Source: Oculina patagonica (Eukaryota). From it: DNA of 64,000 nt. The stretch spans positions 36,332,001-36,396,000 of the forward strand of contig NC_135758.1 in assembly GCF_052425735.1 (NCBI RefSeq). The letters run 5' to 3'. How positions within the stretch are numbered: the first letter of the stretch is position 1; each line of letters starts with the position of its first letter. Under the pieces are notes generated by a model that was given only the letters and a program-made list of their open reading frames with translations, did not search any database and was not told the DNA's origin. Position numbers and translations under genes: made by a program. Positions 4,744 to 41,100 of this stretch are shown piece after piece.

Positions 4744-5316
4744 GGTTGCAATAGTTTCTTAAGTTTTAACCGATACATTTTAGATGATTTCCTCATTGAA
4801 GACTACTTGTTTTGTGGAATAATTCTCGCCTCATCAAGAATACAGCGCTAAATCACTGCTAAAAAGTTTGACAAAACCTTCGCTGATTGCGTCAGCGATG
4901 AGTTTAATGCGTCTGTCCTCTTATTGACAATGAAAATTAGTCAATCAGTGCGCGAGTATTCGCTCAGTTATTGTAAAAAGAAACATAAAAAAACATATTT
5001 TTTCTGAAATTTGTCCCTGTACTAACAACAATGCTTATGCCAAGTTTGAAGTTTTTAGAACTTTTACGTTCGTTTCTGTAAGTGTCTTTAGGTTTTTTGT
5101 GTGCTAAGAATTATGTGTAAATGTACCAGTCGCCATCTTTTTGTGTTCCGTTTTACTTCTGCAGATTGTCCAGATTGGATGAGGAAGTGACAGAAGCCAA
5201 ACACTACGCGTAGAAATGCAAAATCCAAAGCAAACGCGAATTGCTTTTGACACTCAAGAGAAAGAAAACCCACGCTTACTACTCAGTATAAATACTGTAT
5301 AGACTTGGTTACTACT

Positions 5317-5601
5317 TAGAGCAGTTTTCAATTGAGTGTCGTAAAACCAAAACCAATGTAATTACTTCGGCCAATCACAAAAGACACGGACAATCCAGTC
5401 AACCAATCAAACTCGAAGCAAAAAACATGTAACCGGCACGGAGCGCGGGAAAACGTGCGCGAGCGAGTCACGATTGGTTTTGGTTTTAGTTCTGATTGGC
5501 TGAGAAAGTGGCGCGAGATTTTAAAACCAATCACTGAGCGTAGTAATTCAAAACCAAAGCAAACGCAATTTACTTTTGACACTCAAGTGAAAACCGCTCT
5601 A
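5317..5601. mobile_element. MITE with TIRs TAGAGC(A/G)GTTTTCA.TTGAGTGTC
   Basis: Left end tagagcagttttcaattgagtgtc; right end gacactcaagtgaaaaccgctcta; internal ccaatca repeats. Confidence 0.7.
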
Positions 5602-8600: not shown

Positions 8601-10246
8601 GCGATTGTGTTTAATTCGTGCAGTATGTGGTAGGTAGCATGATCACTCGAAGTGCGGTTACGACGTGCGGTTGCGAACTTTTCAACCCTACATTAAAGTG
8701 ATTTTAAAATGCGTTAATCGCATTATCACGTGTCGGGTTTAATCGGTATCCGGTCAACGAGTTTCTTAATCCACTCAACGCAACATACTTTTCAGCTTGG
8801 AATCATAGGTGTTATACGCGTGCCACAATGACAAAAACGTGACCAATGAAATCGATTAACAGAAGATAGCAGGGTACAAAGGGATTGTGGAAGATGACGG
8901 AATATTATTTGTATTCTATTTCCGGCACAGTGGGAAACCCAATCTTGTGCACGATGAGGAGACCTGGCAAATACCTTGCGTTTTTCACATACCATTGATG
9001 ATTTTTTTTAATATTTTGTAGTACGGTAATACCAGTAGAGCGGTTTCACCCCTATTCAAACTAACGTCCGAAAAGAAACATAAGCAGCAACAATTTGATG
9101 AACTGTTGATAGAAACACCCCACCCCCACCCCCACCCCTACCACATCCCGGAAGGTAGCTAAGTATTGATTGATGTGTGCCGCTGGCTCAGTTGGACCGT
9201 CAATAGAAGCCGTGAATAACAACGCGGAAAAAAGAGAAATTAAAATAATATGAATTATTCATGTGTTATACCTCTGTTTGCATTAGTTCATTCGCTGTGG
9301 ACGTGTTTGTAAACTACACCTGACCTGAATAATACCTTGACAACTCCCTACAGGCATTTTTGGCGGGGAAATCGCACAACACGCGCCCGTTCCAGAACAG
9401 AGGAGATTCGGGGTGTGAAAAAACTCGGTTAAAGATAAAAGGCACTTCGTTCCTTTGTGAACACACCACGAGTGCATTAACGGAAAGCTCGTTAAGTAAT
9501 GCCCCTTTACAAGCTACAGATTTTAAGAAGAAAGGTCTTGCATAACTCAAACATTACTTACGTTTTGATTAAAATTTGTGTCTTCACTTGCACGAAAAAA
9601 TCAGCCACTTGAGTCAGTCATGTATGCTAACTTGTTAATGGTATCTATGGGACACTTTGGTGAATGCTAGAACCCACAAGATTAAAAATATACGCCCTCT
9701 CATTGGCTAAAACTAGTCACATGGTACAGTTGTGAGTTGTAGCATTTCCAGTTCACGTGTATAGTCCACTCCTGTCACGTGCTATTTCAACCAAAATCAC
9801 ATGACTGATGAAGTAACTACCTAATTTTACAGGGCTGGCCATGCCACCACCCGCCCCTTCAAGTAGAAGTATTTTGTGGGAAAACGAATGCTGAAAGACA
9901 TATTAATTCTCGAAGCATTCCTCAACTACACTGAATAATCAAGAAATATTTTTAGATCACTGGTTTTGTTCATTTAGTTATATAGAGTAAATGCTAGAAG
10001 AATGCCAATGTCATCAAATTTCATTACCAGCAGGAATTACTAGTCTCGAAACTTCGAGTTCTTTAATCGGAAAATAAATCTATTTAGGGGACTTAAATGT
10101 TTCGATAAATGAATTTTTACTTAAGGTTGTTAATGGAAGTTTTATTGCACTGATTTCAAGCTGAGTTTTTCCTCGCTGTTACTATAAGGCGACATGTATA
10201 AGCTGCACGAGCGGCTGATTAGTACACCGATCAAACATGGAAAATT

Positions 10247-12074: not shown

Positions 12075-13935
12075 GGGCCAAGACCTCTTTCTAACTCTAC
12101 TGAACTCATAGCAAGATGGAGAAGAATATTCAGTTGTATCTGGTGGTTGAACCATTCAGCGAGTTGAAGCTGTTGCAATTTCAGGCTTATTTCACAAGCT
12201 TATTTTCTTTAGAACACACAATGCACAGCACACCCCACCGCAAACTATTTCATAATGACCAAGTGATGCGAGTTTGCTGGTTGATTGTCTTGCTTTTTGT
12301 ACCTCGACAAAAGATCTAGAAAGCCCATGGCCAATGCTGCTACATTGTGAAGATTCTAGTTCCATATGGATAAATGAGCGTTCCTTTCTCAAAATGATCC
12401 GCCGGATCTCGTTTGTGCATGTTTCAAGTTTACTCCTGACTCCTGGTACTAATTATATGATACGGTAAATAATAAATAAAATATTACCTTTAAATTAGCT
12501 GCTAAGATACTTGCTTTTTTCTCCTACTTTCTTTCCACGTACAATACTGGCGAGATCACTAAATGCAGTCCCTCACTCGAAACCGAAATGTCAAGCTTTG
12601 GAGTTCCAGATCTTACTATTTAATACCTTCTGGGTAAAGACACGGGAAGTATGCCTTATCCAAATTTATACGTAACGGATATAGAATGTAGAAACACCTA
12701 GGCAACTAGGCACTAGGCAACGTATTAGCGATCACGTCCACTTAGACGGATGGTAATTAAAAAAATGAGGAAAAATTATCGGGCGTGCTGCTGTTTTTTA
12801 ATATTGTTTATCCTACGAACATTTAGTTTTTAATGGCTACTGAATGGGATTTCCATGAAAACGTATTGCGTGTGCCCACGAAAACACGAAAGAAACAAAG
12901 GCAAAAAAAATATCGATACGTCAAGGAGTGGTTAGTATATGCTCAGGTGATACTGGCTGCTTAGCTTCTTTAATATCTATGGACGAGATTTAGACCACGA
13001 GCCTTCCTTCCACTGAGACGCACCTTTATCCTGCTACACTCTTATTTTGCACGCAACTTCTTCAATTTCTCCTTGTTCAGCACTACTTCTGCTTCATCAA
13101 GTTTATACATCATGCGTCAAGCTAAAGGGTCTCAGGAAAGCTAGATGAAGGTATTGACCCTTTGAGGTGGTCTTCCACTCGGAAAGTCTGAAAGGTTTGG
13201 ATAAAAGGGCTATTATAATAACAGCAATAATGTTATTTGAAGTGGTTTTAATTTTCTTTTTCTCGCGGTTATATGCATGCATATTAGATGAAAGAAATGC
13301 GTACGCTGCAACGCCCGTGGCAAAGGTTGTTGGCAATCTGACTTTTTAAGCCCTTACGAAAGTGTCACATTTCTATTTTTTTCAAATTCTGCTGTATGAT
13401 GAAGCCTTGAAGTCCGATAATAAGTCAAACAAATAATGACAAAAATTTCAGAGAGGGGGAAGGGGGAGGTCGGATTACTTAAATGACATGAAAAAGCTGG
13501 GATTTTTGAGGTTTAGTCCTTAGAGATATTAGCGACCTTCAGATTGGACTACGAGTACGAGATTGAGTACGAGTTTTCAAACCAAATTCATGTGCCTCCT
13601 ATAATCACTTATCCCACCAATCGTATCCCTAACGTTTATATGTGTCTTAGTCAGCAACAGGGAAGAGTAATAGTTTGGGGAATACAATTGTGTCGAAATT
13701 CCAAAGTCGTACTCGTACTCGATCTCGTACTCGTAGTCAAATCTGAAGGTCGCTATTATAGTTAACTCTGACCCTAACGCAACGTCAAAATGATTAAATA
13801 CAGAACATGAAGTACGACAGCCAACGTTCCTAATTTCGATTTTTTTTTTTATTAGAACGTTGTCATTCCATATTCAGCTACAGGAAACTGACTGCGAGAT
13901 CCTCACGTGGTTTGTATTTAAACTACCTTAAACTA

Positions 13936-14060
13936 AACGGGAACGTCAGTTGACGACGGCGCGCGCATTAAAAATGCCCATGTATGGGTGTTTTTATGCG
14001 CACGCTACCCATATATGGGTAGTTTTAATGCGCGCGCCGTCGTCAACTGACGTTCCCGTT
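13936..14060. repeat. Palindromic fold-back repeat
   Basis: aacgggaacgtcagttgacgacggcgcgcgcattaaaa is followed by ttttaatgcgcgcgccgtcgtcaactgacgttcccgtt. Confidence 0.75.
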
Positions 14061-14191
14061 CTCTTGCTAAATCTGTCTATTGTCTCGTACCCTACGCCTT
14101 GTAACCATTATTGCTTCTTTCTTGCCCCGCAAAGGGATTAATAAGTCAGCGACTTGCGCTGAAGCTTTGTGCTTGTTATGAATACAGGGCT

Positions 14192-14640
14192 ACCCCGGGG
14201 GGGGGGGGGGTACTCCCATAAATTTCGGATTGGGGTGTGCCGCCAAGGTTCTTTAACCCTGACCCTATTTAAGGATAAAAAAAAGCGAAAATTGATACCC
14301 TTTTTAAGGCCCAAAACCGAAAAAAGACACCCTATTCAAGGGGAAGAGAAGCGTTCCGTGACGACCCAAATATCGCCTAACCGCGCACGACAAGACGCAA
14401 ATCTTTATAAAATCGCTTTTCTAATACCTGAACAGAAAATTCAGTTTTAAGTTTTTCGTTTAGCTGGGCGTTTATTTTAGCTAATAGAATTTAGGTACCC
14501 TATGTAAGGATCACACCAGGAACACATTGCCAAAAGGAGCAAAAATGATACCCTATTTAAGGACCGAGAACCTCAAAAACCATACCCTATCGGGCGGCAC
14601 ATACCTATATAGGCCACATATGGGAGTACCCCCCCCTGGA
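14192..14640. mobile_element. Second copy of the CCCGGG-terminated element
   Basis: Ends ccccggggg..gtactccc / gggagtacccccc. The subterminal aaaaccataccct..gcggcacatacctatata matches 10610-10650. Confidence 0.65.
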
Positions 14641-16156
14641 GGGCTACGAGGCGATACTGTCACGTTAGAGTCACGTTGGGGCACGGTGATTTGGTGGTCT
14701 TGCATTTGAACGACTTTTCTAAAATGATTTGAAATGATAGAATAACACAACAGAAATACTTGAAACGGAAAAATAACGGAAAAAGATTGGAACGAATGAG
14801 GCTACGTTTACACGGACACGGTTTCATTTGTAACCGCATCGAAAGCGTGCGGTTCCCTTTTTTTACCGGCCCTTGGCTTTCGGGGTTTTTAAAAACTCTT
14901 AGGGTTTTAAAATTTTTTTTATAAGAAAAAAAAAACTTATTTTTGGGGAGGAAAAAAAGGAAAAAAGTATAAAATTTTTTGTTAAAATACTGAATTGACG
15001 TAAACTTGATTACTAGCAAAGATAAAAGATTATTCTGTCCACAATGGAATCGCTTTGAGGTATTGATCGCGACGTCTCGACTGCTTTACAGCTAGTCTTC
15101 ATAGCAGTACAGCAGTCGAAACATCACGATCAACGCCTCAAAGCGATTCAATCGTGAGACAAAAGAATAAACGTTCATCTTTCCTATCTCACACCACGAT
15201 GAACAATAAACACATCTTTGATGACAACTTTATTGCTGTTGAAAATGAACAGAAATGTGTGTCAAAAATGTAGTTAACAATGTTCAGAAATCATATGAAG
15301 CTTATATCATGTCATAAACAAAAGTAAATGAACATCTCCACGAGTCATCAAATGTAGCAACGCGTCACCCCTTTGAAACTTCCCCGTGAAAGGCACTGTT
15401 CATTATATAAGGCACTAACTATATATAACTATATAACTATATAAGGCACTGTTCATTATATAAGGCACTAACTATAAATTTTGTAAATTTTAGTACTTTT
15501 TAACTAATATTTCAGTTTTTAAACTGATATACCTGATGTAATAGCTTTAGGAGTCTAGAGTCCACAATTAGTTTTCGTTTTAAGTGCTAATTACGCTCTT
15601 TTTTTATAAGAATGTCCATTTTTGGGCTAACGCTGAACATTCTTAGTTTTTCGACGATTTGAGGCTGTGAGATAATGCGGTACGTCTCCCTTAAACGCAT
15701 TAAGATTATACTTTAAGGTGGTGGAAATGTTGTTTTCTTGTTGGATTTGACAGAGGTTGATTCGTACTTGTCATTTTTCGCAAAACTGAAAGGTAAAAAA
15801 TAGTAATAAAGTTTTTACTCGGAAAATTTCAGCCTTGGGTACGTTCTTAGCTTGTTCTTACATTAGCCTTTCTCAGCCTTTATATTCTTGTTATTAAAAA
15901 GGTTGTAATTAAAAAGAGTGTCCTTAGACACTTCAACAAAGTTATTCCTTCATTCACTGTTTTGTTTGTAGCCTGCGCAGCTGGCGGGATTTCGCGCGCA
16001 AAGCACTCGATTGAAATCCCTCCACGCGCGAAATCCGGCCAGCCACGCAGGCCTTTTGGCGCGTAAATTTCTGAATTAGCTCGTCGCGTCGCTGGTTCTA
16101 CAGGTTCTTGTTTCTTGTCGTGTCTGGTCACGTACAGGCTGCAAAGTCAACAGCTC

Positions 16157-25039
<8,883 letters not shown>

Positions 25040-25202
25040 TTTACAAAATGTTATTTGTTCCACAGAAATCCCATGAGTAGGACGCCATCTTGTAAAGTAA
25101 CTCCGCTGGTCACTCTGATTGACACTTGTAAAAGAAGGCGATAGTTCCCAGGCTACCGCCAAGGCCCACCCCAGTGTCCGCAGACATAAGGGTACGGGGG
25201 GT

Positions 25203-25400
25203 ACGAGCTGCGCGGTTTTGAAGCCCTTGCAATTTTTCAGCAAGGCCCTTGTTACAGCTTCCCCACACTACGTTGCAATAATCAAATTGTGGTTGAATAA
25301 GGCTATTATAAACTAGGATTAAAATATTAAATTGAGTGAGATGCCGAATTTGTTTAATTGCACCAATGGCACAAGCTATCTTCTTAGAAATGTTTTCAAT
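25203..25400 (-). mobile_element. LINE (CR1/L2-group) reverse-transcriptase C-terminal fragment
   Basis: IENISKKIACAIGAIKQIRH...YNSLIQPQFDYCNVVWGSC..KLQGLQNRAAR is typical of the RT thumb region of this LINE group. Confidence 0.8.
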
Positions 25401-25550
25401 TAGAGGGCCAGAACTTGATTCTTTGACCGGAAAGCCAGAACTCATCAAATACTACCTGCTACAAGACAAGGAGGTCACAATACAAAACGAAAGGTACACA
25501 GTGTGTACAGGTGGCTACGTGTTGTTTCCATATCGAATGCATCGGACAAA

Positions 25551-25797
25551 TGTAACACTATGCCAATAACAGATCAAGTCCGCATACTTCACGTGCCAAA
25601 CGCAGTGAGGTTATATAACAACGCGGCAATTGTAACACAGTTAATGACGCATCAAGCCCCCATAATTCACGTGTAAACAAACACAGTGAGGTTATATAAC
25701 AACGCGAATGAATCGGGGAACAGTAACACTATGCCAATTACACCTCAAGTCCGCACAATTCACGTGTACACAAACAGTGACGGAGGTTATATAACAA
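25551..25797. repeat. Three ~85-bp tandem repeats
   Basis: Unit gtaacac..caag..c..ttcacgtg..aaac.cagtga.ggttatataacaa starts at ~25551, ~25631 and ~25722. Confidence 0.7.
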
Positions 25798-26649
25798 GAC
25801 ATACAACACCTACAATGCACATATGCAAGTAGCCAAAAAAGTGAGAAAAGTCGCCAGGAAGTTTTTCTTACAGCCCCTTTTCCCCTCCCATGGACTGAAA
25901 GAAAATCATGAATTTCAAAATGCAGCCTGAAAATTGATTGCTGTCCTTTAATTTATTGCACAACGAAAGCAGTCAGGGAGCCAAAAGTTAAAATCATCCA
26001 ATCCGAGTGCTCCATTGCACTCTCACAGCCTATTGTTAAACCGAATCGATTAGCGCGAATTAATTACTGGTATGCAAATAACTACACACGTGTGTAGCGA
26101 TATCTTTTCTTTCTTTTTCTTCTTTTATTGTGATATCTTTTCTTGATTTTATTCCATATGGTCAAAATCAGAAAATATCTTTGTCTTTATAATACAGGAA
26201 TTTGAAGTAATACAAGGAATTTGAAGTATTATTATTAAGAGAAATAAACCGTAACACGAATCTAAATCTAAATCGTAATCGTAATCGAAACGCGATTCTA
26301 AGGTATGTACTGCCATCAATGAAACCTTTAGTATCTACTTTTTTGAGTTTCCAAGAAAGAGTGCGTAAAATCATACTATCACCCAATTCAAGATATTCTA
26401 TCACGTTACATTACAAGGAACACTGAAAATCGCGAAATTAATTCAAGTTACATATATACGTAGTCGGCGAAAATAAAAGAATAGCAAAATATTGAAAAAG
26501 AAAGTTACACAAAGACACAAAAATGTGAAGAGATGTAACCAAAAAATAACATGAAAATTGACTCGAACGCAACATAATATCAGTTTCATTGAGGCTAATT
26601 AGCACGCATTAGAGTTCGGCGAATAATCTTCATCCTTTGGCCTTCGACC

Positions 26650-26970
26650 CTAATGAGAGCCAAGCGACTTTTCCAATCCAAACTCGTACCTGACATTTTG
26701 CAATTCAAGATGAGGAAGGGCAGCAAAATACTCGGCAGGCATTAGCATCACGCAGATACTATTTCTTCGTTGTTGCGTTAGATCGTTCATCGGTGCTGTA
26801 AAATTCTCTAGTCCCCTTATCGGCTTGTTGGTTGGTACGGACTGATTCAGTTTTTCAGCGGGTATTTTGTTGTGGTTTTCCGCTTGCTCTCCAAACTTTC
26901 TCTTTTGTTGAAGATACGGAGAAATTGACTGGGGAAGCAGAAGCCGCTTAGATTTTCCTTGTGGCTCCAT
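26650..26970 (-). CDS. Unknown 106-aa intronless protein (paralog 1 of RRNSIC-LMPAE family)
   Basis: First ATG at 26970 (MEPQGKSK...). Frame is conserved with paralog 2 across an in-frame indel. Upstream CArG, CCAAT and TATA-like motifs; AATAAA (minus strand) at ~26150 is conserved in the duplicate. Confidence 0.7.
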   Translation of the reverse strand: MEPQGKSKRLLLPQSISPYLQQKRKFGEQAENHNKIPAEKLNQSVPTNKPIRGLENFTAPMNDLTQQRRNSICVMLMPAEYFAALPHLELQNVRYEFGLEKSLGSH

Positions 26971-27133
26971 AGGATTGCAACGACTCGCCAGCAAGGAAGA
27001 ACTGGACTGCTTAGTATTGCACAATTTACGATGAAGAAGCGGACATGCAAAGAATCATATAATTGGCATCTTTGGAGCCAATAGGAGTTGGGAAAGACGA
27101 GATCTTGCGCAAGAGAGAACAGTGTAAACAGCA

Positions 27134-27170
27134 CCAAATAAGGCACCGTCCTGCGGTACAAATAACCAAT
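27134..27170. promoter_or_regulatory. CArG box (CCAAATAAGG) + CCAAT module upstream of paralog 1
   Basis: Exact CC(A/T)6GG at 27134-27143 and CCAAT at 27166-27170. The module recurs at 30813-30849 and 31077-31115. Confidence 0.55.
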
Positions 27171-27356
27171 CACAATCAACGGCTAATCATGCATGACTCA
27201 AAATGCAAACAATTCACAGTGCCTACTAGCCAAAACAGAAAAGTCCTATCGGAGGGCAACCATAACACAAAATCCCTTCATTTTGCTACCCTAACACAAA
27301 ACGCCTTATTTTGTTACACGCTTTAAAAGAGGTCAATCCAGGCATCCCACAGTGAT

Positions 27357-29245
27357 GTCAAGTGTTGCAAGGTCAAAGTTTCCCACGTGCGACGCGCGAG
27401 AGATCTGGGTGACGGCTTCTCTTACACGTGTATGTTTATGTAACAAGTGTCAATTATGTAACTGGAGTTCGGTAATATTAGATCGAAAGAAAAACTCACA
27501 CAGTTTTGTCAAGTGTCGGAATTCGAAGGTCAAAGTTTCCAACGTGTGACGCGCGAGAGATCTGGTGACGGCTTTTATTACACGTGTATGATTGTGTAAT
27601 GTCAATTATGAAACTAGAGATCGGGTAATATTAGATCGATAAAAAACTCTCACGGTGTTGTCAAGGGACGAAAGGTCAAAGTCCCGGGTCAAAGTTTCCC
27701 ATGTGCGACGCGTGAGAGATCTGGTGACCGCTTCTATTACACGTGTATGATTATGTAAGATGATTATGTAACAAATGTCAATAGGCCATTTCCGAGTTAC
27801 CCTTTGCCTCTGTTTCAAAACGAGTCTACGTGCGAAACTATTCAAATGAAAATGAGTTTGACTTGCATGAAAATGGGCCTGAAGGTGAAACTCATTTTCA
27901 TATAAATGGTTTCGCACGTAGACTCGCTTTGAGACAGAGGCAAAGGGTAACTCGGAAATGGCCTATTATGTAACTAGAGATCGGGTAATATTAGATCAGT
28001 AGAAATGCTCACACGGTGTTGTCAAGGGTCGGAAGGTCAAAGTTTCCCACGTGTGACACGCGATGGATCTGGTGACGGCTTTAGTTACACGTGTATGATT
28101 ATGTAAAACGATTATGTAACAAATGTCAATTATGTAACTAGAGATCGGGTAATATTGGGTTGATAGAAAAACTCACACGGTGTTGTCAAGTGTCTAAAGG
28201 TCGAGGTTTTCCACATGCGACGCGCGAGAGATCTGGTTACGGCTTGTATGATTATGTTCTGGTGATTATATAACAAATGTCAATAATGTAACTAGAGATC
28301 GGGTAATATTGGGTTGATAGAAAAACTCATACGGTGATGTCAAGTGTCTAAAGGTCGAAGTTTACCACATGCGACGCGCGAGAGATCTGGTGACCGCTTC
28401 TATTACACGTGTATGATTATGTAACAAATGACAATTATGTAACTAGAGATCAAACGGTGATGTCAAGTGTCTGAAGGTCAAAGTTTCCCACGTGCGACGC
28501 GCGAGGGATTCCATTACACGTGTATGATTATGTAAGACGATTATGCAATGTCAATTATGTAACTAGATCGGGTAATATTATATTAGATCGATAGAAAAAA
28601 ATTCACACTGTGGTGTCAAGTGTCTGAAGGTCAAGGTTTCCTTCGTGGGACGTGCGAAAATGGTATGACGGCTTCAATTACACGTGTATGATTATGTAAG
28701 ACGATTGTGTAACAAATGCCAATTATGTAACTGGAGTTCGGGTAATATTGGGTTGATAGAAAAACTCACACGGTGTTGTCAAGTGTCTGAAGGTCAAAGT
28801 TTCCCACGTGTGACGCGCGAGAGATCTGGTGACGGCTTTTATTACACGTGTATGATTATGTAAGACGATTGTGTAACAAATGCCAATTATGTAACTAGAG
28901 ATCGGGTAATATTGGGTTGATAGAAAAACTCACACGGTGTTGTCAAGTGTCTGAAGGTCAAAGTTTCCCACGTGCGACGCGCGAGAGATCTGGTGACGGC
29001 TTTTATTACACGTATATGATTATGTAAGATGATTATGTAATGTCAATTATGAAACTAGAGATCGGGTAATATTAGATCGATAGAAAAACTCACACTGTGT
29101 TGTCAAGGGTCGGAAGGTAAAAGTTTCCACGTGCGACACGCGAGGGATCTGGTGACGGCTTCTATTTCACGTGTATGATTATGTAAGGTGATTATGAGTG
29201 TCAATTATGTAACTAGAGATCGGGTAATATTAGATCGATAGAAAA
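27357..29245. repeat. Minisatellite, ~11 units of ~160 bp, rich in CACGTG and ATTATGTAA
   Basis: Unit gtcaagtgtctgaaggtcaaagtttcccacgtg.gacgcgcgagagatctggtgacggctt..attacacgtgtatgattatgtaa..caattatgtaactagagatcgggtaatatt; for example, 28779 to 28942 is 163 bp. Confidence 0.9.
27781..27966. mobile_element. Palindromic MITE inserted into one minisatellite unit
   Basis: ataggccatttccgagttaccctttgcctctg...cagaggcaaagggtaactcggaaatggcctat interrupts the unit motif tcaattatgtaac. A partial relative lies at ~5928-6000. Confidence 0.8.
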
Positions 29246-30344
29246 ACGATTTTGTTGGACTTGTTGAGTACAAACGCAATAATACTTGAGTACTGTACAA
29301 AGATTTTCTACAGACTGTCAACGAAGGAATAAAGAACTTTTATACAGTTCTCAGGTTGTGAGTGGAATTATTACGAATAGTCCGGCAACACTAAATGGAA
29401 AATCTCAAAAAATCATGCCTTGATCACCGATGGCCTTAAAACGCAATTTTGCTTCTGACTGCACACATGCCTTGCTCAACATTTCCAGCAAAAAGTTCCA
29501 AATTAATCTAACACATTAAAGTACTAAAAATTGTATAACAAGGGGACGCTCCCCATGCACACGGAGCAACAAAAAGTTGGAAATGTCGCTAGGAGTTTTT
29601 CCAACTGCCCCCTTCCCTGGATTGAAGGGAAAACAAATGAAAACGGAGCCTGAAACGTGATTACTGCCTAGTATGACAAAATACATGGCATTTCCAAGTA
29701 TCATAACAGGACTTACACTCTCACAACAGATTCGCTGAACTGCATAAATGAGTGCGCTTAACTTACCAGCTGGTATATCAAATTATTACGGAACATTTTT
29801 TTTCTTGATTTTATTACATATGGTCAAAGTGTGAAAAATTACATCACTGTGAAAATAATAAAAAAAAACTAAAGTATCGTCATTACAAGAAATAAACTGT
29901 TGGGCACCGATAAAGTAACGCCAATCTTAATCTTGAGTCGGTGAATTTGATTTTAACAAAATCGAATTGGGTTAATGTCGATACTGCCATCAATGAAACT
30001 TTCAGCATCAGCCTATTTACATTTCCAAGGAAAAACTACGTTAAAATGATAGTAACACACAAATCAAGAATTTCCATCACGGTACATTACAAGAAAAAAA
30101 ATCGTAGCGCTAAAATTCGCGATTAACTCAAATTCAAGTTACGAAATCGGCGAAAAATATATAAAAAAGTTACATCACTGTAAAGTTATCTTAGCTGTAC
30201 ACAAAGACACACAACAAAAATTGTAACAATATGAAGAGATTTCTCCGCAAAAAGCTTGAAAATTGACAGCGTAAAATCAGTTCCATTTGGATTTGTTAGC
30301 ACGCATTAGAGTTCTGCGAATAATCATCATTCTCTGTCTTTACC

Positions 30345-30671
30345 TTAATCAGTGTCAAGCGACTTTTCCAAACCAAACTCGTACCTGACATTTAACAATT
30401 CAAGATGAGGAAGGGCAGCAAAATACTCGGCAGGCATTAGCATCACGCAGATACTATTTCTTCGTTGTTGCTGTGGATCGTTCATCGATGATGTAACACT
30501 TTCGGGTCCCCTCATCGGCTTGTTGCTTGGTGGAGACTGATTCATCTTTTCAGCGGGTATTTTGTACTCTTTTCCTTCTTGCTTTCTGATCTTTTTCTTC
30601 CGTTGGAAATACGGAGAACTTGACAGAGGTGGAAGATAAAGTGGCCGTTTAGATTTCTCGTGTGGCTCCAT
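30345..30671 (-). CDS. Unknown 108-aa intronless protein (paralog 2 of RRNSIC-LMPAE family)
   Basis: First ATG at 30671 (MEPHEKSK...). The C-terminal QQRRNSICVMLMPAEYFAALPHLEL.NVRYEFGLEKSL is shared with paralog 1. The duplication extends through promoter and 3' flank (~26100-27180 vs ~29790-30855). Confidence 0.7.
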   Translation of the reverse strand: MEPHEKSKRPLYLPPLSSSPYFQRKKKIRKQEGKEYKIPAEKMNQSPPSNKPMRGPESVTSSMNDPQQQRRNSICVMLMPAEYFAALPHLELLNVRYEFGLEKSLDTD

Positions 30672-30812
30672 GGGCTTGCTACGGCAAGTGCGGTCGGCAA
30701 GGAAGAATGATTGCTCAGTACTGTACAATGTATGGTGAAAAATCGGGCGTTCAAAGAATTATATGAGCTGAAAAAGGAAGTTCTTACGCACGTCGAACAG
30801 TGAAAAATAACA

Positions 30813-31115
30813 CCAAATAAGGCACCGGCCTGCGCTACAAATAACCAATCACAACCTGTTCTTTTGATGTAAAGCGCATGCTTGCGTATAAACCATAATT
30901 TCATCGTATGTCAGTTATTACACCAACTTTGGGTAGTAGTGAAGCGTGAAGCAACTACAAAAAGTAAATATTTTAATATCGTTGTAAAAGACGACCCTTT
31001 GTGCAACAAAACAGAAAACTTAAAACATTCGAGGCTAAGGAAAACTGAGAACTTATACTCGTGGCGGAAGGCCAACCCAAATAAGGCACACTGTCCCGCG
31101 CTTCAAATAGCCAAT
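30813..31115. promoter_or_regulatory. Two CArG + CCAAT modules upstream of paralog 2
   Basis: CCAAATAAGG at 30813 and 31077; CCAAT at 30845 and 31111. Confidence 0.5.
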
Positions 31116-32034
31116 CACAAGCAGGTTGTTTTCTATGTCATGCGCAGGCATATATTTATCATGAGACTTCCATGAGACTGCAAGCTGTTCCTTTTAATCA
31201 GACGTGCGGGCGCAAACGCAAGCGAACAACTATGAGCCGAGCGAGAACTGGAGGAGAGAAGAAAAAAAGGACAATATTAGTTTATTTTTAACATGTAGGA
31301 TTATCTGAATACGTCTCTTACAGAAAAGGTTGCTATTTCTTTTTCTTTTCGCTTTGCTCGCCCGATCGTTGCGTTTTCTTGTTTTTGCCCGCTCGACTGA
31401 CTGAAAAGCTAAGGGACAGCTATCAGTCTAGTATGTTTTTTTAAATCACCATAAGCCTCCTGTTTTAAAGAAAATTCGTTTTTTTATGTGAAACAGCAAA
31501 ATAGGAATACTCGGAAATTGCACAGGGCGGCGGAGCAGGGGGGGTCAGGGAGGCGCTGTAGCCACGTTTTGGTGCCGAAATATTCCGTCTCGTGAGTGAG
31601 TTCAAACATCTTCGGAACTTCCTTGGAAGTCTTCGGGAAACTTCGTTTATCTTCGGAAAAGTTTGAAAAACGATCGGAAATGTTCGCATTGCCTTCGAAC
31701 AGCAATCGGAGAATCTTCAGAAATCTTCGGTCTAGAAACTGCTCAGAAAACAAAAAGTTGCTAGCACGGAAAAAAGTTGCTTCAAATATGAAAACTTGCC
31801 GAGTATTTTTGGGACAGTCTTAGCCCTCCACGTTCCGAAACGCCCCGCCGCCTAAACGTTGTAAGAAAAAAGCTAAAAAAACGTCACAGAAAGTGACCAA
31901 AAATCCTTAATTTACACACAATTGAAACAGCCCGCGAAATGCATTTGAATGAAACTGTACGCGTAAACATACCAGTTAATATTGTTAATGTTTTTCCCTT
32001 CGCACAGTAACAAGACTTGGTTGGCATGTTACGT

Positions 32035-33019
32035 TTAAATCAGATCTGTACCTGACAGCACACTCAGCAGCTCAAGATAAGGAATGGCTCGAAGATGCTC
32101 GGCGGGCATCAACGCCGCACAAATAGCATTTCTCCTATGCTTTGAACCAACAAGCCACCCTGTAGGACTTTCACTTTCACTGCCTGTCAACTCATCAGCG
32201 GAAATTTCCCCTCCGTTTGATTTAGCAATATCACAGCATTGTCTCTTTCGTAGAAAACGCGGTGACCATGATTTCTTCAAAGCACTTTCGTTTGGTGACT
32301 TCACTGATAAAAGGCCATCATCGCACACAACGATCTCTGGATTGCTGGGATGTTCAGAAGAACTTCCACTGAACTGTTTACTGGAGGAAATGTCCTCATG
32401 ACAGTTCCTCTTCCGTAGAAAACGCGGTGACCATGATTTCTTCAATCCATTTTCACTTGGTGACTCGGGTGGTGACTTCACCGTTAAAAGGCCATCATCG
32501 CACACAACGATCTCTGGATTGCTGGGATGTTCAGAAAAACTTCCACTGATCTGTTTACTGGAGGAAATTTCCTCATGACAGTTCCTCTTCCGTAGAAAAC
32601 GCGGTGACCATGATTTCTTCAATCCATTTTCACTTGGTGACTCGGGTGGTGACTTCACCGTTAAAAGGCCATCATCGCACACAACGATCTCTGGATTGCT
32701 GGGATATTCAGAAGAACTTCCACCGACTTGTTTACTCGAGAAAATTTCTTCATTGGCATTTCCTCTTCTGTAGAAAACGTGGTGACCATGATTTCTTCAA
32801 AGTATCTTTGCTAGGTGTCTCCACTTGTAAATAGCCATCGTCACATAGGACGATCTCTGGATTGCTGGGATGTTCGGAGGAGCATTCGCTAATGTCACTA
32901 GCCTGCTTGCTCTCTGCAAGTTCCTCCACATTTGATTCAGCATCGTCATGGTATTTCTCCTTTCGTGGGAAACGTGGTGACATTGATTTCGTCGAAGTAT
33001 TTTCGCTTCCTGGACCCAT
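32035..33019 (-). CDS. Unknown ~327-aa repeat protein (paralog 3, RRNAIC variant); +1 frameshift at ~32753 as assembled
   Basis: ORFs 32750-33019 and 32035-32682 join if one extra A is removed (tgccAatgaa vs tgtcatgag in the sister repeats). Contains 180-bp/60-aa repeats and ends HRRNAICAALMPAEHLRAIPYLELL. A CRE-TATA-Inr promoter lies upstream. Confidence 0.65.
32245..32990 (-). repeat. Coding tandem repeat, 180-bp period
   Basis: SEHPSNPEIVVCDDGLL.VKSP....LKKSWSPRFLRKR is repeated; the near-identical units at ~32399 and ~32579 are 180 bp apart. Confidence 0.85.
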
Positions 33020-33110
33020 TGGTAAAAGGCAGTTGTCACATAGGACGATCTCGATTGATCAAGAAATTTGCACGTTAAAAAAAAAAAAAACAGAGCGAAG
33101 GCAAAGTCGC

Positions 33111-33174
33111 AACTGATGACACTGAAAAGTTGTTGTTACTTTATATGTTGTTTTTGATTTTCACAATGACGTCA
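33111..33174 (-). promoter_or_regulatory. CRE - TATA box - initiator core promoter for paralog 3
   Basis: TGACGTCA at 33167-33174, TATAAA at 33145-33140 and TCAGTT at 33116-33111. The Inr A at 33114 places the TATA box at -31. Confidence 0.65.
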
Positions 33175-33244
33175 CTTGTCTTTCGAAAACCAATCGATTT
33201 CCTCGACCATAATCCCTCTGGTATTAAAAAATAAAGAAAAAGCG

Positions 33245-33451
33245 AAACGTGGTGACCTTTAAATTCTTCAAAGTATGTTTGCTTCCTAGATCCATTGGTA
33301 AACGGCAGTTATTACACAGGGCGATCTCGATTGATCAAGAAATTAAAAAAAAAAAACAGATCAAGGGCAAAGTCGCAACTAATGAAAATAAAAAATTGGT
33401 TGTTTTCTTCCCTAGTTGTTGTTTTTTTTCGTTATTTTTACAATGACGTCA
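33245..33451. repeat. Degenerate duplication of the paralog-3 5' end and promoter
   Basis: Aligns with ~32968-33174 (gaaacgtggtgac..ccattggtaaa.ggcagtt..cgatctcgattgatcaagaaatt..ggcaaagtcgcaact). It keeps TGACGTCA at 33444 but has lost TATAAA. Confidence 0.75.
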
Positions 33452-34376
33452 TCGTGCTAATTGGGTAATTGTAATAATAATACAACCGGCATTTAGAAAT
33501 TTAAATAAGAATGGCGACCTACGTACATACCTGTTGTTGTTTTTGTAATGAAAACACCTTTACAAGTATTTTTATCCATTAGTACATTAATAACTTTATG
33601 TTGGAGGGCAAGGAACGTACTGAAAGAAAATAACCCAAGGTCTAGCGAACCGAGCTGTGGCCCGCGTTTTGCCTGCCCTTGGGCATTAACATCGCTCATG
33701 ATGCCCTTGAACATAACGGAAATATCCGGTCCCGATTGAGACTATTAACCAATCAAATCGCGTGATATATGCAGCCTAGTACCCAGGTGTTCTCTCGTTT
33801 TATTTAACGCGCGAAGCCTGAAACTGGGATCTCGTTGTTAAAAACTCGTTGACCTGCAACGCGTTTAACAAAAACCGCCGAACGCTAACCTGATTCCGAT
33901 GGAAATTTGTCAGGCCTTTTACTGTACCTGAATTTACTCTATATACCTGGAGCCGAGCTGGGGAACCACGCATAAGGACTGTAAACAATACAAAAATAAA
34001 ACTTTATTTACAGACTGATGCTTGAGGATACACCGACTATTATTTTTCTTTTGCTCCTATGTAAGACTGATTACAAAACTTCACATCCACATTTGCATGA
34101 AGTGATGACTATAAGGGTACAAGAGATACAGTGGAGATAACAGTATTTTTTATCCTTTTTTATCCTTTTATTCCCAAATAAGTGAACCGTCTTTCTTCGT
34201 TTTGGTGTTCAAGATCTGTTCCAGAATACAAAACCCACGTTTAAAAAGTAAAACGTCCGCTTCAAACCCTTGTCACATCTACCTTCAGCACAGAAGATTT
34301 CTTTCAAGACGTTCTCGTTTTTGCGGATCCGTCGTTCTTACAGGTCAGCAACACGTTTGCTCATGCGTACTGATTC

Positions 34377-35137
34377 TTAGTCCGTGGGAGGTCCTTCACC
34401 GATCTCGTAAAAAAGACTTCGCACATCCAACATGGAAGCCAGTTCAAGAACTTGCTTCTCTATGCTGCCGTTGAGTAAAATTTCTGCCGCTGGCAGCTTA
34501 GGGAAGCTCTTCGGGTAGTAGTCGGAACCCTGAAAAAAAAAGACAAGTAAATAAACAAAGACTTTGGGAAAACAATGCCAAAATTTATTGACTTCCATGT
34601 AGCCAAGAATAGTTACGTAGTAAAACCGGCATGGACTGAAAATAAGGAAGATAAAAGTCTGTTAAGGGCCGATTGATACGGGACGACTTTCTCGCATGCG
34701 ACACTGTCACCAGCAAAGTGCGATCGTATTTCATAAAAACCTGATTCGTAACAGTACTGCTTACAATCTCAGACTCTCTACAATTAAGCACTCCAGAAAC
34801 ACTGGGATTTTCTTCCAAAAGCGTTCAAATCAGACCAGTCTCTTGAGTCGTTTATTGTAAATCTTTATTCTCTTGTCTTAACGCACAAAAAATAAAAAAT
34901 AAAAACTTTATTTATCCTGAAGGGCCAATCAGTGATCATTAGATCACTGGTATGAACTGGCGATCAGCATTAAGTATAAAATACATCTATTCTTAAAATA
35001 CAATTGCAGTTAACCAGAGTATTTTTTTCCATTTCTGTAAAGAAATTTTGTTATTGTAGTTTTTTTAGTAAATTCTTAGCACGGCTTTCTTAGAACCCAA
35101 TTCTTTGTAACTGAAGAGATTCCGTGTGGAAATGAAA

Positions 35138-35193
<56 letters not shown>

Positions 35194-38100
35194 TATAAGC
35201 TTACGACAGGCCTATGTCATGACTTAGTATCATTTACACGTGCACGTGTCTGTCGTAAGGATGTAGTAGGTTGATTTACCGACGCGATTCGTTTAGCAGT
35301 CATGGCGAAAGTGTATCGCATGCGACAATCGTAGGGTTTTCTTACACCCCTTTTTACTTATTAGCATTAGAAAAAATGTCTTTCGACGCTGCACTGCATG
35401 GCAATCGAGCCACAACCTAAATCCTTAGGATGGTTCTGTATGAATTTATCGCCTTTTCTGCAAAACACCGTGGTTTCTCCTGGTAAATCTAAGCAAGTCC
35501 TTCCCCGTCAAGGAAATTTTGACAATACCTTGAATGCTCGATGAAGATGCATCGTGTAGAAACAGAAGATATAACGAAGAATCATCAGGCGAAGAAACTC
35601 GTCATCGAGAAGCTGAATAAAGACAACATCTGTAAAATGAAAACAACAAAAAGGCGTGTTTAGACAACTTGTCAAAATGCGACGATTCATGCAGTAACCT
35701 TTGTGTGGCAGATGATCTGCAAAACAAACTTGCCGCACTTACGGGAGAATGGAACGCTTAGCTGGTGACAAGCTATTTTTAAGTAATTATTTTTTACAAC
35801 TCTCTAGGGGAAATGGAAACGAACTTTATTATCCAGTAGAAGGCATATCCCACAATCATTTGCAAAAAAAAATATGAGCCTAGAAGTTTAATACTAGCGA
35901 CCATTAGATTTGACTACGAGTACATAATCGAGTACAAGCACGACTTTGGAATTTAAAGACAATTGCATTCCCCGTACTATAACTCTTTCCTGTTGCTGAC
36001 TAACTCATAAAAATAAACGTAAGGGATAAGATTGGTGTGATAAGTGATTATAGGAGAAACACGAATTTGGTTTGATATCTCGTACTCGTACTCAATTTCT
36101 CGTACTCGTAGTCCAATTTAAAGGTCTCTAGTACTAACAGCTCTATACTGTCTTGGCTGAAAGTTTTAAATTGGTAATGTCTTTCGATGCCTTTCTCACG
36201 CCACGCGACTCACCAACATATCGAGACCAGTCGTAGAATACTCGGAGGCTGTCGTTCATTATTCGTCGAACTTGCCGCTGACAGCTATCCCACAAGTCGC
36301 TACGAAGGTCGGCAATGCTGCACACGTAACAGAAGGCCACTAGCGGATTGAAGAGAAACAACGTGAAGAGACTTCCCTTGCGACTTTGTTCTGCAAGATA
36401 GGAATAAGCATTAACAGATAGAAATTGCCTTCAATTTATCTCTTAAATCATGATACGTCCTTGCTAGAAACTCGCCCCTCTCCAAAAAGGTAACAAACAA
36501 GCCTCAATACCTCAGCTAGACATCAATCAATAAAGTCACAGTGCAGGAACCATCACGATCAGAACATCAATGTGGTGCTGTTTACTTTGCGGTACAAGAT
36601 GGTTCTATCTTTGGCATCCGTGGATGAAACTCCAATACTATAAAGTAGTAGTCTTTATTTATGTGTTTAAAATGCTGTACAAGATAGTTCTAACTTTTGA
36701 GTCTGTGGATGAAAATCCCATATTAAGTAGTACTTTCATTAGGTACTGTTTATTATGCTGTATAGAGTGGTTCTAACTTTCAAGTACATGGATTAACTCC
36801 CATTCACTGTGTGACCATACAAATGACAGCTAATGACCGGTATTTTCCCGACGTCTTCAGCATGGGTTGTTTTAAGCCTTGTAATAAATTATTTTTGCGA
36901 CACGTGGTGTCTTTGACGTGGCGACGTCCACAAAATGAATTCCTATCCTAGCAAAAATTCCGTACTGGAACTAAATCCACTTCGGTACAGTAGTTGTTAT
37001 TTTGTTTTGTAACGTACCACTACTCCAGTGAGGAATGCGTGACGCTTACCATGGCTGCGTGACATAAGCAGGGTTGCATATTTACCTTGCATTGTGGTAG
37101 GAACCGTGATAGGTGACATCAAACAGACCAGCGGTTGCCCAAATAAACTTGGAAAATACTGCAAGGTAAATGATGAAATTCTTGATTACAGAAAGTGTCG
37201 TTACAACAATATACCAATGTTGCAAGTGGTGATAACATGGTGCAAAATACAGTGTTTCGAGGGAATCAAATATTTAAAAAAATCGATTACCTGAGGAGAA
37301 ACCAGAAATGTAAAAAAAATAAAGGAAATGTATTGTTAAAAGGAAATTGTATAATGAACTCACTTTAAAAGCGTGACTGTTTGAGCTATCCACTATCACC
37401 ATGAGTGGTTTCCTACTGAACGGCACAAGGTCTTCTGGGTACAGACTACAAAACAAAGGTGAGTAAGTTAGTTCACACTTTATACATCACCATCGTCTCA
37501 GCAGTGATCATCACAACGGTTTGCTTACCAAATTGCTTTGCTCTGAGATTTATATTTAGATACAGAGGTCGAGAGTTCAAACTAGACGGAAATAAGCCAT
37601 TGTCACTGTGTTGTGTTCTTGAACCAGTCACTTCACACTTACAGTCTCCAGGGGTGTAAATGAGTACCTAGTTATATTGGGGTAACCTGTGATGGACGAG
37701 AATCCCATTTAAGGGGCGTGGCAATTACTACTAGTTGCTTCATACCCGAGGCATGTACGTCACTTGCGGCTGTTCAACCAATAGGCTTTATAACATAGCT
37801 AGCAGAGCCGCGCAATCAAACTCAGTATATGTAAGCGTGTTCAAAATCCCGATCGTGCACGCTGATGACGTAATCCTATCGACAAGTTTATATCTCATTG
37901 AGAAAAACTCACAGAATGTGTTTTGTCGAAAGCGATAAAATATATTTGGTTTGTGGAAAGCGAAACCCTATCAATCTTTTTTTCAGCTTTCGTTACTTTT
38001 AAGGTACTCGCGCTATATTGGGAAAACAACTGTCTAAATGCACGCGCAAAATGGCTACAATGCACGAAAGAAGCTAGAGTTGCCCTCGGCTATCGCCTAG

Positions 38101-41100
38101 GGCAATTCTTACGCTTCTTTCGTGCTCTCCAAACTTCCCGCGTGAATCCATAACTCGATAGTGCAAAATAAAGCATGAACCAATTGTGGTTGCATATGAC
38201 TTCTTTCGTAAATCAGACAACAGTAGAAATCTCAGTAATATTTATCAAGTTAAAACAAAGCAAAGGAGAACCGTGACGGTGGTTTGAATATGTGATCTTA
38301 ATAAGCATCGGTTATGCGATTTTATTGCTCCGTTTTCTCCGTTGCTTTTTCCAAACACCTCAACGTTCGTCAAAAACACTCCACTGCACGTCGTATTCCC
38401 AACTTTCTCCTCGGTATTTGAAATGTGTTTGATATATATTACTTCTAGAGCTATTAAAAGGGTGACAGAACGTCACTTCCGATATAGCTACGTAGACCGG
38501 CCACATCGTGGTTATGAGACCAATGCCGGTCTGGGCCCAGTTGTTCAAAAGGCGGATAACACTATCCACCGGACAAATCGCTATGCAGTGGATAAGTGCT
38601 AACAAAACAAACTGTGCTATCCACTGGATAGCGAATTATCCGGTGGACAGCGTTATCTACCTTTTGAACAACTGGGGCCTGTCGGCTCATGGGCCTGTCC
38701 TATATCAAAATCAGTTTGCCATAGTACAAAAGCAACGTACCAGTGAACGTCCTTCAGGTTAGTTCTCAGGCGCCTCGCGGCCTCTTCGTTTCCCGCCTTT
38801 TTATGACAAGTGGCAACTCCTCCCAGTTCGTAGGGACCTAAAGAGATAGAAACGCATTGTCATGTGACGTGCGTTTACGTGCGTGAAAAATATTTAGAGA
38901 CAATGTATGAACGACTTGCGTAAACGTTTACGAAACGTTTATTGAAATCCACCAATAGAGAGGTCACGGAGATTATTATATTGTGCAATTGAGGTTACCT
39001 TCTTCTCCAGCCTTTGCGCTTCCAGGGCAACCATCACCGGACACATAAACTAACATAACGCCATTGTTGGGAAGTTCCTGAAACAACAACAGAAGTTTGT
39101 AACTGGATAGTGTCCTTTTACTGGTCTTCTGTAAATTAAGGTCGACACACACGAGAGGTCAAGTCCCTGCAACAAGTCCCTTATTGTGAACCACCCATTT
39201 TTGACAAAAATCTAGTCGCAGGGACTAAGATTTCGTCCCAGGGACTTGTATCAGGGAGTTGCCCCCTGTACTTGTATTTCGTGTGTGCTGACCTAAAACT
39301 TTGTTTCCTTTTGCTTGGTTTGAGCACATACCAATTTTGGTTTGAACTTGTCTGAAAATTATCTAAATGCGAGATTTCAAAGAGGAATTTTCTGTTTTAA
39401 TCACTCTTCTGTAAATTCAAATTTGCGATTTACTCTAACCTATAGCCATGACTGATTAATCGTCAATGAGAACAACTGCAAATCCTAGATGTAATAGCGC
39501 TTACAGTCATCCGCGCAACAATCTAGGCACACTGAACTATAATGATAAAATCCAATTTCAGTTCAACAAAAACTGAGTTGCTCATAATTTAAATGGATGC
39601 CAACCTTAACACCGCAGGCCAGAAATACGTACAACTGAGTCAGCGTTGGTTTGTACAGAAGGTATTTATGGGGATTAGGTCTCTTGGATGACGATCGCTC
39701 CATCTCGCTGGTTTCCTAAACAGAAAAGAAGCACATATTACAATAACGACTCAACTCTGAGACGTAGCTTTTTAACTTTTTTACTTTTCTTGGTCAGGCC
39801 TGGTCAGGACCCTGACTGGTTGCTAAGAAACATAGCGTAGCCAAATAGCGTCATGCGGAGGTAATCAAACGATAGTATCGTTTGGAATACCTCTGAGTAC
39901 ACGCGCCATTTTTGTACCGGATGACAAGAAACGAAAATTCTTCAAGTCACAAAGATTTGCCAAAACCGCTACAGTAAAAACCCGCGTTTTAGAGTTTGGC
40001 AAAACAGGTTCTTATATTTTGGGGTACTTACTGGCATTTTTTAGCTCCCTGTGCATTCTGATCCTAGTCCTTTGATAAAATACAGTTATTGTATTATAAA
40101 TAAAATAGTTTAACCCCACATATAAGAACTTGGGGATTAAGGAAGCAAATTCTGCCAGGAGGTTCTTATTTCTAGGTTCTTATACGCGGGTTTTTACTGT
40201 ATTCTTCACGTACAATTACCCTGTGAAATGAAGAAGTCGAGAGCTGTAACCTTTATTACTGAATGGATGTCATGGCTCACCCTGTCAACGGGGCTCTCAG
40301 AGACCTCGGTAGAAGTTACCAAGGTACGTGAAGGAGCGTCCTCGGGTTCTCTCTCCAGGGCTTGCAGCATGCGGAACATGTCCAGCGTTAACTCGCTGAA
40401 TTTGACCTTGGGGAAAATGATAGATGGAAGTGATCAAAAAACAAACTTCGTTTATTACATTGTTTTTACACAGTGAAATGACGAATAGGTTATGGAGAGG
40501 GTATGCATTAAAACCTGGTTTTCACTAGCAAAGCAAGCACAAGCGCAAGCACAGACGCAAGCATAACAGCTCGTATTTCACCGTGAAAACCGCTTTGACG
40601 CAAGAATAAGCACAGGCACAAGGATCAAAATTTTTCCTTTTCTTGTGCTTGCATTATGCCGTGTGAAAACGAAACACGCATAAGCACAAGGAAATTTACG
40701 ACGTCTGGCCGTGTCTGGCCAATTAAAGCACTGGTTCCAGATTACCCCGCTTCGGAGCATTTGAGCCATGTAACTAGTAAACATCGTGTTATTATGCTTG
40801 TGCTTATGCTTATGTCGACGTTCGTTTTCACTTGACACAGTATATTCTCTTTACCCCCTGGGTAGGGTTATCTTTCTCTTCCCAGGGCAGAGTGTGGATA
40901 CTTAGACAACTGGACGCAATTGTTGTTCAACGGAAGGATATTGCTACGCACAGGATGAAGCACTACCCAGTGGATCGATCGAAATAAATGGATCGACGAA
41001 AGCAGGTCACAACAAGCTGCAACAAAGAGGATTTGCCGCAAGCAACGTGTAACAGCCAGGTCTTCCCTGCAAACCAACTTTGTCTGCACCAGCTACGGCT

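Follow-up and report, generated by a model that had tools for sequence, protein, structure and literature searches.

The question raised by this locus is what the C-terminal tail of one of its predicted proteins does. The window (the whole 64,000-nucleotide stretch of Oculina patagonica DNA analysed here) contains three related genes, paralogs 1 to 3, and in paralog 3 the tail reads Arg-Arg-Asn-Ala-Ile, a likeness of the pseudosubstrate through which PKI inhibits the catalytic subunit of PKA (PKA-C). A first-pass annotation had described this tail as a PKI-like module in which the pseudosubstrate is followed by an NES-like motif. Here we report that the paralog 3 module is real and conserved and that the family to which it belongs is unannotated; the assignment to PKI, the NES and the proposed switch between paralogs are not supported as they were stated.

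The 41-residue tail, as quoted in that annotation, matches the minus-strand translation of the genomic sequence exactly (Table 1). RRNAI occurs once in the 127,996 six-frame residues of the window, and the looser patterns RRx[AG]-hydrophobic and RRx[ST]-hydrophobic occur 18 and 22 times, respectively, in the same six frames. The hydrophobic spacing of NES class 1b appears in 39% of shuffles of the paralog 3 protein, and 90% of the shuffles match some NES class. On their own, the RRNAI and NES motifs are weak evidence; the R-R-N-A-I core exceeds chance expectation because it is conserved among homologues.

Table 1. Positions in the window of the family genes and of features within them
Feature	Positions	Strand	Basis
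Paralog 3 tail, 41 residues and stop codon	32035-32160	minus	translation
Paralog 3 stop codon	32035-32037	minus	
LRAIPYLEL, NES-like hydrophobic spacing, paralog 3	32068-32094	minus	
Core R-R-N-A-I-C of paralog 3	32119-32136	minus	translation and family conservation
RRNAI within paralog 3 tail	32122-32136	minus	
P-site Ala of paralog 3, GCT codon	32125-32127	minus	
Trp P-10 and Leu P-9 of paralog 3	32152-32157	minus	
Trp P-10 of paralog 3	32155-32157	minus	
Open frame with repeats 2 to 4 and tail	32038-32796	minus	
Coding tandem repeat, 177 bp, 2.9 copies, 94% identical	32293-32800	minus	
5' ORF of paralog 3, ATG at 33019, 89 codons, ends at TGA	32750-33019	minus	
Extra C relative to other repeat units, a frameshift	32755	minus	
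Paralog 2, small NVRY subtype	30345-30671	minus	
RRNSI of paralog 2, P-site Ser AGT	30450-30464	minus	
Paralog 1, small NVRY subtype	26650-26970	minus	
RRNSI of paralog 1, P-site Ser AGT	26755-26769	minus	

An orphan family of stony corals and its C-terminal module

Paralog 3 ends in the C-terminal module that defines an orphan family of proteins, which are small (73-296 aa) and predicted to be intrinsically disordered. Alignments A1 and A3 unite long and small types in one family through this module, for which alignments A1, A3 and A4 give the consensus R-R-N-small-[I/V]-C-x-hydrophobic-L-M-P-x-E-Y-F-x-x-L-P-x-L-E-L-L; the module of paralog 3 follows it, departing at the Tyr-Phe only. In the subtype of paralog 3 the C-terminus reads Leu-Ser-x-x-Gly/Asp-Leu-Ile/Val, and its members include a long form with 59-residue repeats (P0001-P0008) as well as many proteins of 73-109 residues. 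In the NVRY subtype, to which paralogs 1 and 2 belong, the module continues into Asn-Val-Arg-Tyr-x-Phe-Gly-Leu. What is multiplied in the repeats of paralog 3 is the motif found at the N-terminus of the small members, Leu-Ser-Pro-Phe-Leu and then basic residues. The 59-residue repeat (32245-33019 in the window; orthologues P0002-P0008) has a conserved Pro-Glu-Ile-Val-x-Cys-Asp-Asp-Gly-Leu-Leu, and its second conserved motif, Lys-Lys-Ser-Trp-Ser-Pro-Arg-Phe-Leu-Arg-Lys, is homologous to that N-terminal motif.

Two stony corals, Oculina patagonica and Desmophyllum pertusum, are the only named sources of the family; a further homologue comes from a scaffold of the Tara project, which sampled reef corals. 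An exhaustive profile search of 1.84 billion representative proteins returned only 21 clusters, all from this same coral family, and gave no link to a known domain. No Pfam family was found by hmmscan in the ORFs of the window or in 26 family members at E-values up to 1 and 10, single-sequence and family-profile searches gave no relative in the PDB, and a feature search of the ESM Atlas with the coral family gave nothing above noise. P0001 has 5 to 7 orthologues. No poly(A) tail is seen in the orthologue contigs from Logan (L006-L010), which hence are not proof of transcription.

We counted conservation over 62 distinct homologous modules, 48 belonging to the subtype of paralog 3 and 14 to the NVRY one, many of them close relatives whose counts are not independent. 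The arginine pair at P-3 and P-2 is present in every one (48/48 and 14/14, thus 62/62), which bears out the expectation that it is conserved among orthologues. Asn at P-1 is found in 40/48 and 14/14 (54/62 overall), a hydrophobic residue at P+1 in 48/48 and 12/14 (60/62), and Cys at P+2 in 47/48 and 14/14 (61/62). Fixation of the P-site alanine in orthologues had been named as a check, and it holds: in paralog 3's subtype Ala is present in 46 of 47 modules, the remaining one having Val; the denominator omits P0009, a truncated NVRY-type NCBI model of paralog 2 that a script had misbinned.

Upstream of the core, modules of paralog 3's subtype are hydrophobic at P-10 (83%), P-9 (69%) and P-6 (79%), a spacing that would suit an amphipathic helix, and the NVRY subtype lacks an upstream hydrophobic pattern at these three positions. 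Trp at P-10 of paralog 3 had been taken as the counterpart of the PKI phenylalanine. The tryptophan itself is peculiar to Oculina, being Leu or Ser in the orthologues, which do keep Leu at P-9; the position is nevertheless mostly hydrophobic across the subtype, with Phe in 20 of 48 modules. PKI has an arginine at P-6 that was said to be absent here, and this is correct: paralog 3 has Ser there, the subtype at large has Ile, Leu or Ser, and Arg never occurs.

Conservation does not end with the core. Positions P+4 to P+23 are conserved at least as strongly, in the order hydrophobic-Leu-Met-Pro, Glu/Asp-Tyr-Phe, Leu, Pro/Ser, Leu-Glu-Leu-Leu, Leu, and the LRAIPYLEL of paralog 3 falls within this block. 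The spacing that suggested an NES is a conserved one, but the pattern, found as it is in so many shuffled proteins, does not discriminate. The dN/dS is about 0.1-0.3 in the module against 0.3-0.6 upstream. AlphaFold2 predicts disorder, its mean pLDDT being 40 in paralog 3 and 57 in paralog 2; it leaves the core extended and places two short helices in the block of about 20 residues that follows; for the Gly-rich upstream stretch of paralog 3, a long-type protein, it predicts no helix. These models gave no fold worth searching.

Several known short motifs were compared with the module by eye and set aside: BH3 (a conserved Asp or Leu is missing), the APC/C D-box (Ile/Val stands in place of the required Leu), FFAT (the acidic tract is missing and position 4 varies), LIR (several members have Arg at a hydrophobic position), a PDZ ligand (P-2 is Gly, Asp or Arg) and dibasic prohormone cleavage (a signal peptide is missing).

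A candidate pseudosubstrate and its precedents

The invariant arginine pair, the fixed alanine, the hydrophobic P+1, the cysteine at P+2 and the upstream hydrophobic residues together make a pseudosubstrate reading reasonable. R-R-N-A-[I/V]-C would copy the R-R-x-S/T-hydrophobic consensus of PKA-type kinases with a non-phosphorylatable residue in place of the acceptor, and the core may sit as a decoy in the active-site cleft of a basophilic AGC kinase, in the manner of PKI, RI and the PKI motif of Smoothened. The PKA catalytic subunit would be the prime candidate target, and the downstream block of about 20 residues could supply a second contact or a localisation signal. The consensus is common to PKG, Aurora and other kinases, so the target of the coral core may not be PKA.

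Comparison with the PKI pseudosubstrate (PMC6514771) gives both likeness and difference. Both proteins are small and disordered, the coral ones by prediction; the R-R-N-A-[I/V] core is identical, with Ala at the P-site; and in both, though only in most of the coral modules of paralog 3's subtype, hydrophobic or aromatic residues lie about 10 positions upstream, and a Leu-rich motif lies downstream. PKI, however, has Arg at P-6 (Arg15 of PKI) and the coral module has none. Conversely, PKI lacks two features of the coral module, the Cys at P+2 and, behind the core, a tightly conserved block of 20 residues. The coral genes, moreover, lie in tandem arrays and paralog 3 carries 59-residue tandem repeats. 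The PKI family of Pfam (PF02827) gave no hmmscan match for the ORFs of the window and 26 family members at E-values up to 1 and 10. The family profile searched against all PDB chains gave 0 hits at an E-value of 10, in a chain set that should include many PKI peptides co-crystallised with PKA-C. As judged from sequence, the coral family is not a member of the PKI family and has no detectable homology to it. What stands of the PKI-like reading is the R-R-N-A-I core with its fixed Ala and invariant Arg pair, the predicted disorder and the conserved downstream hydrophobic spacing.

The regulatory subunits of PKA offer a further match to the core itself. The inhibitor sites of human RII are RRVSVCAE and RRASVCAE (PMC7865299), and the pattern R-R-x-[S/A/G]-[V/I]-C corresponds to the coral core as far as P+2. 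The cysteine at P+2 is thus common to the coral core and to known binders of the PKA cleft, a point in favour of the decoy. Further, the RI and RII forms differ by having a non-phosphorylatable residue or a Ser as acceptor, as do the coral modules. The coral proteins differ in having neither a cyclic-nucleotide-binding domain nor a dimerisation/docking domain (no Pfam hits), which implies that any inhibition would not be released by cAMP. The profiles and chains of PKA R subunits gave no match to the family, even at an E-value of 10.

Smoothened, in its C-tail, is a precedent for a PKI-like decoy outside the PKI family, and one with Ile at P+1. The hallmarks reported for its motif are Ala at the P-site, Arg at P-2 and P-3, a hydrophobic P+1, an upstream aromatic residue and an N-terminal helix; it bound PKA-C at about 0.8 micromolar, and replacing the Ala by Ser inactivated it (bioRxiv 10.1101/2021.07.05.451193). 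Roughly micromolar affinity is thus reached even without the full set of PKI determinants. The coral core has the core hallmarks of this type, and the upstream hallmark in part. The setting is different, since Smoothened is a membrane receptor in which the motif acts via avidity at the membrane, and the coral proteins are small and apparently soluble.

Based on these comparisons, we tentatively propose that the paralog 3 family is an analogue of PKI with a pseudosubstrate core, and not a detectable homologue, a reading that is plausible and to which we give a little less than an even chance. A point that weighs against the decoy is that neither binding to the PKA cleft nor an NES would call for conservation as tight as that of P+2 to P+23, which suggests another or an additional interface. 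A wider proposal, which we consider possible but somewhat unlikely in its entirety, is that stony corals possess lineage-restricted, tandemly amplified, disordered pseudosubstrate brakes on PKA-C or a related AGC kinase, independent of vertebrate PKI, in which an Ala/Gly/Ser series at the P-site would tune the module between decoy and phosphorylatable forms and a second module would serve export or contact.

In corals, calcification, symbiosis, responses to light and the activation of sperm have been linked to cAMP/PKA signalling, and coral-specific PKA regulators are not known. If the family inhibits PKA-C, the PKI solution would have been invented twice, independently, the second time in multiple copies and with natural variants of the P-site, and the family might furnish new sequences as reagents to probe the kinase cleft. 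Should it bind no kinase, it is still a family without annotation whose 30-residue motif is very strongly conserved.

Alternative readings and the state of the paralog 3 copy

The same conservation can be viewed differently, with the module docking on some partner other than a kinase cleft and forming one continuous interface of about 30 residues whose likeness to a PKA pseudosubstrate is coincidental. Conservation is unbroken from P-3 to P+23; Cys at P+2, Met-Leu-Met-Pro, Glu-Tyr-Phe and Leu-Glu-Leu-Leu are invariant or nearly so and would be needless in a binder of the PKA cleft; and the P-site accepts Ala, Gly and Ser, as if only the packing of a small residue were required. The RRx[AG]-hydrophobic pattern is also frequent by chance, as its six-frame count in the window indicates. 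However, no other known short motif fits (again by eye), and the likeness to kinase inhibitor sites reaches P+2 and takes in the upstream hydrophobic positions. We regard a docking motif of this kind as a realistic possibility, although we would sooner expect it to fail than to hold.

The integrity of the Oculina copy of paralog 3 is a question separate from the function of the family. The ORF is 100% identical to part of P0001, a 286-residue hypothetical protein of Oculina patagonica, and one might suspect that, whatever the role of the family, the copy in the assembly is an inactive or decaying allele. The only ATG (at 33019) opens a 5' ORF whose frame is not that of the tail, and the frame of the tail (from 32796) contains no ATG ahead of it; start codon and tail are separated because the extra C shifts the frame. 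The NCBI model spans this frameshift only with an 88-nt GT..AG intron (32699-32786) placed inside a coding repeat. Moreover, the near-invariant Tyr-Phe at P+10/P+11 is replaced by His-Leu in Oculina paralog 3 alone, and dN/dS in the module is 0.59 between paralog 3 and its closest orthologue.

Other features of the copy argue against decay. The frame of the tail is open over some 250 codons, and no stop codon interrupts the three repeat units, which have the identity given in Table 1 and each carry the motif SWSPRFLRKR. An in-frame version exists, since the extra C is absent from contigs in runs X5 and X7, which bear other organism labels and whose contigs are about 90% identical at paralog 3; other contig depth in these two runs retains the extra C. 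RNA from the gene amounts to a single 207-nt contig (32496-32702) from a small run, the polyA RNA run has no reads from it, and two small RNA runs contain only 7-13% of the words of its 3' part; scant as this signal is, the available runs are small. On balance, we think it unlikely that the copy is a weakened or inactive allele.

The promoter-proximal region of paralog 3 (33111-33451) is duplicated, with the copies about 277 bp apart, and each copy includes the palindromic CRE TGACGTCA in full (33167 and 33444). Contigs from X5 and X7 contain a joint that jumps back 258 bases (33259 to 33002) near this promoter, which suggests that the promoter-proximal region is copy-number variable. We considered whether a conserved CRE promoter might independently tie the family to cAMP signalling and rejected this, as full TGACGTCA sites lie upstream of paralog 3 only; none is present upstream of paralogs 1 or 2 or in locus L001.

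A further reading concerns the P-site residue, which is Ser in paralogs 1 and 2. The first-pass annotation had supposed that a Ser/Ala switch separates substrate from inhibitor paralogs, so that paralogs 1 and 2 would be substrates of PKA and paralog 3 its inhibitor, a division of labour like that of RII and RI. The serine is kept in both small Oculina paralogs and in the syntenic small gene of the coral of locus L004, at a dS of about 0.65, and in Smoothened the exchange of Ala for Ser at the P-site turns a pseudosubstrate into a substrate (bioRxiv 10.1101/2021.07.05.451193). But when the distinct modules of the NVRY subtype are tallied, six-frame hits in the window and in the fetched loci among them, 12 have Gly at the P-site, 5 have Ala and 3 have Ser, so that most orthologues of paralogs 1 and 2 are non-phosphorylatable there and the residue does not separate the paralogs as proposed. 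The codon for Ser is always AGT, that for Gly always GGT, and that for Ala GCT or GCC; AGT is one transition from GGT, and Ser is hence a derived, minority state, present in Oculina and the L004 coral. A substrate/inhibitor switch is, in our estimation, improbable.

Genuine homology of the family to metazoan PKI, obscured by extreme divergence, is highly improbable: the small members are of the PKI size class, the R-R-N-A-[I/V] core is identical and the order of hydrophobic stretch, core and Leu-rich motif is the same, but neither profile nor sequence gave a match at any threshold tried, P+2 to P+23 has no counterpart in PKI, and the P-6 arginine of PKI is missing.

Gene arrays and neighbouring sequence

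All three copies of the module in the window lie on the minus strand, in the order paralog 3, paralog 2, paralog 1, and FAALPHLEL follows RRNSI in both paralogs 1 and 2. A same-strand tandem array in which a small NVRY-type gene comes after a long-type one is a trait of the family that is present in the window. Loci L004 and L005 keep the order of long-type gene and small NVRY-type gene, and loci L001 and L002 are arrays of 5-6 family copies each within about 11 kb on one strand. Both arrays also contain broken copies, in L002 at 8650-8676 and in L001 at 7560-7586 and 14918-14944, one with an in-frame stop inside the module and two truncated; the coral family therefore turns over by birth and death. 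In locus L003 a reverse-transcriptase ORF (RVT_1, 13098-15797) lies downstream of the long-type orthologue, where the small NVRY-type neighbour is expected.

The NCBI model of paralog 2 (P0009, 96 aa) terminates at Asn-Val-Ser, and the genomic ORF continues through an Arg-Tyr-Glu-Phe-Gly-Leu tail that is conserved in all orthologues; from this reading of the sequence, the annotated 3' end of the model is probably wrong.

Directly upstream of paralog 1 lies a minisatellite (27369-29247) whose units, about 154-164 bp in period, are repeated up to about 7 times. The interval 31532-31864, located between paralogs 2 and 3, reaches a contig depth of about 25,000-39,000 in run X5 and 5,000-8,000 in run X7, against only tens to hundreds in its flanks, and internal skips are numerous there; by its appearance this is an interspersed repeat of very high copy number.
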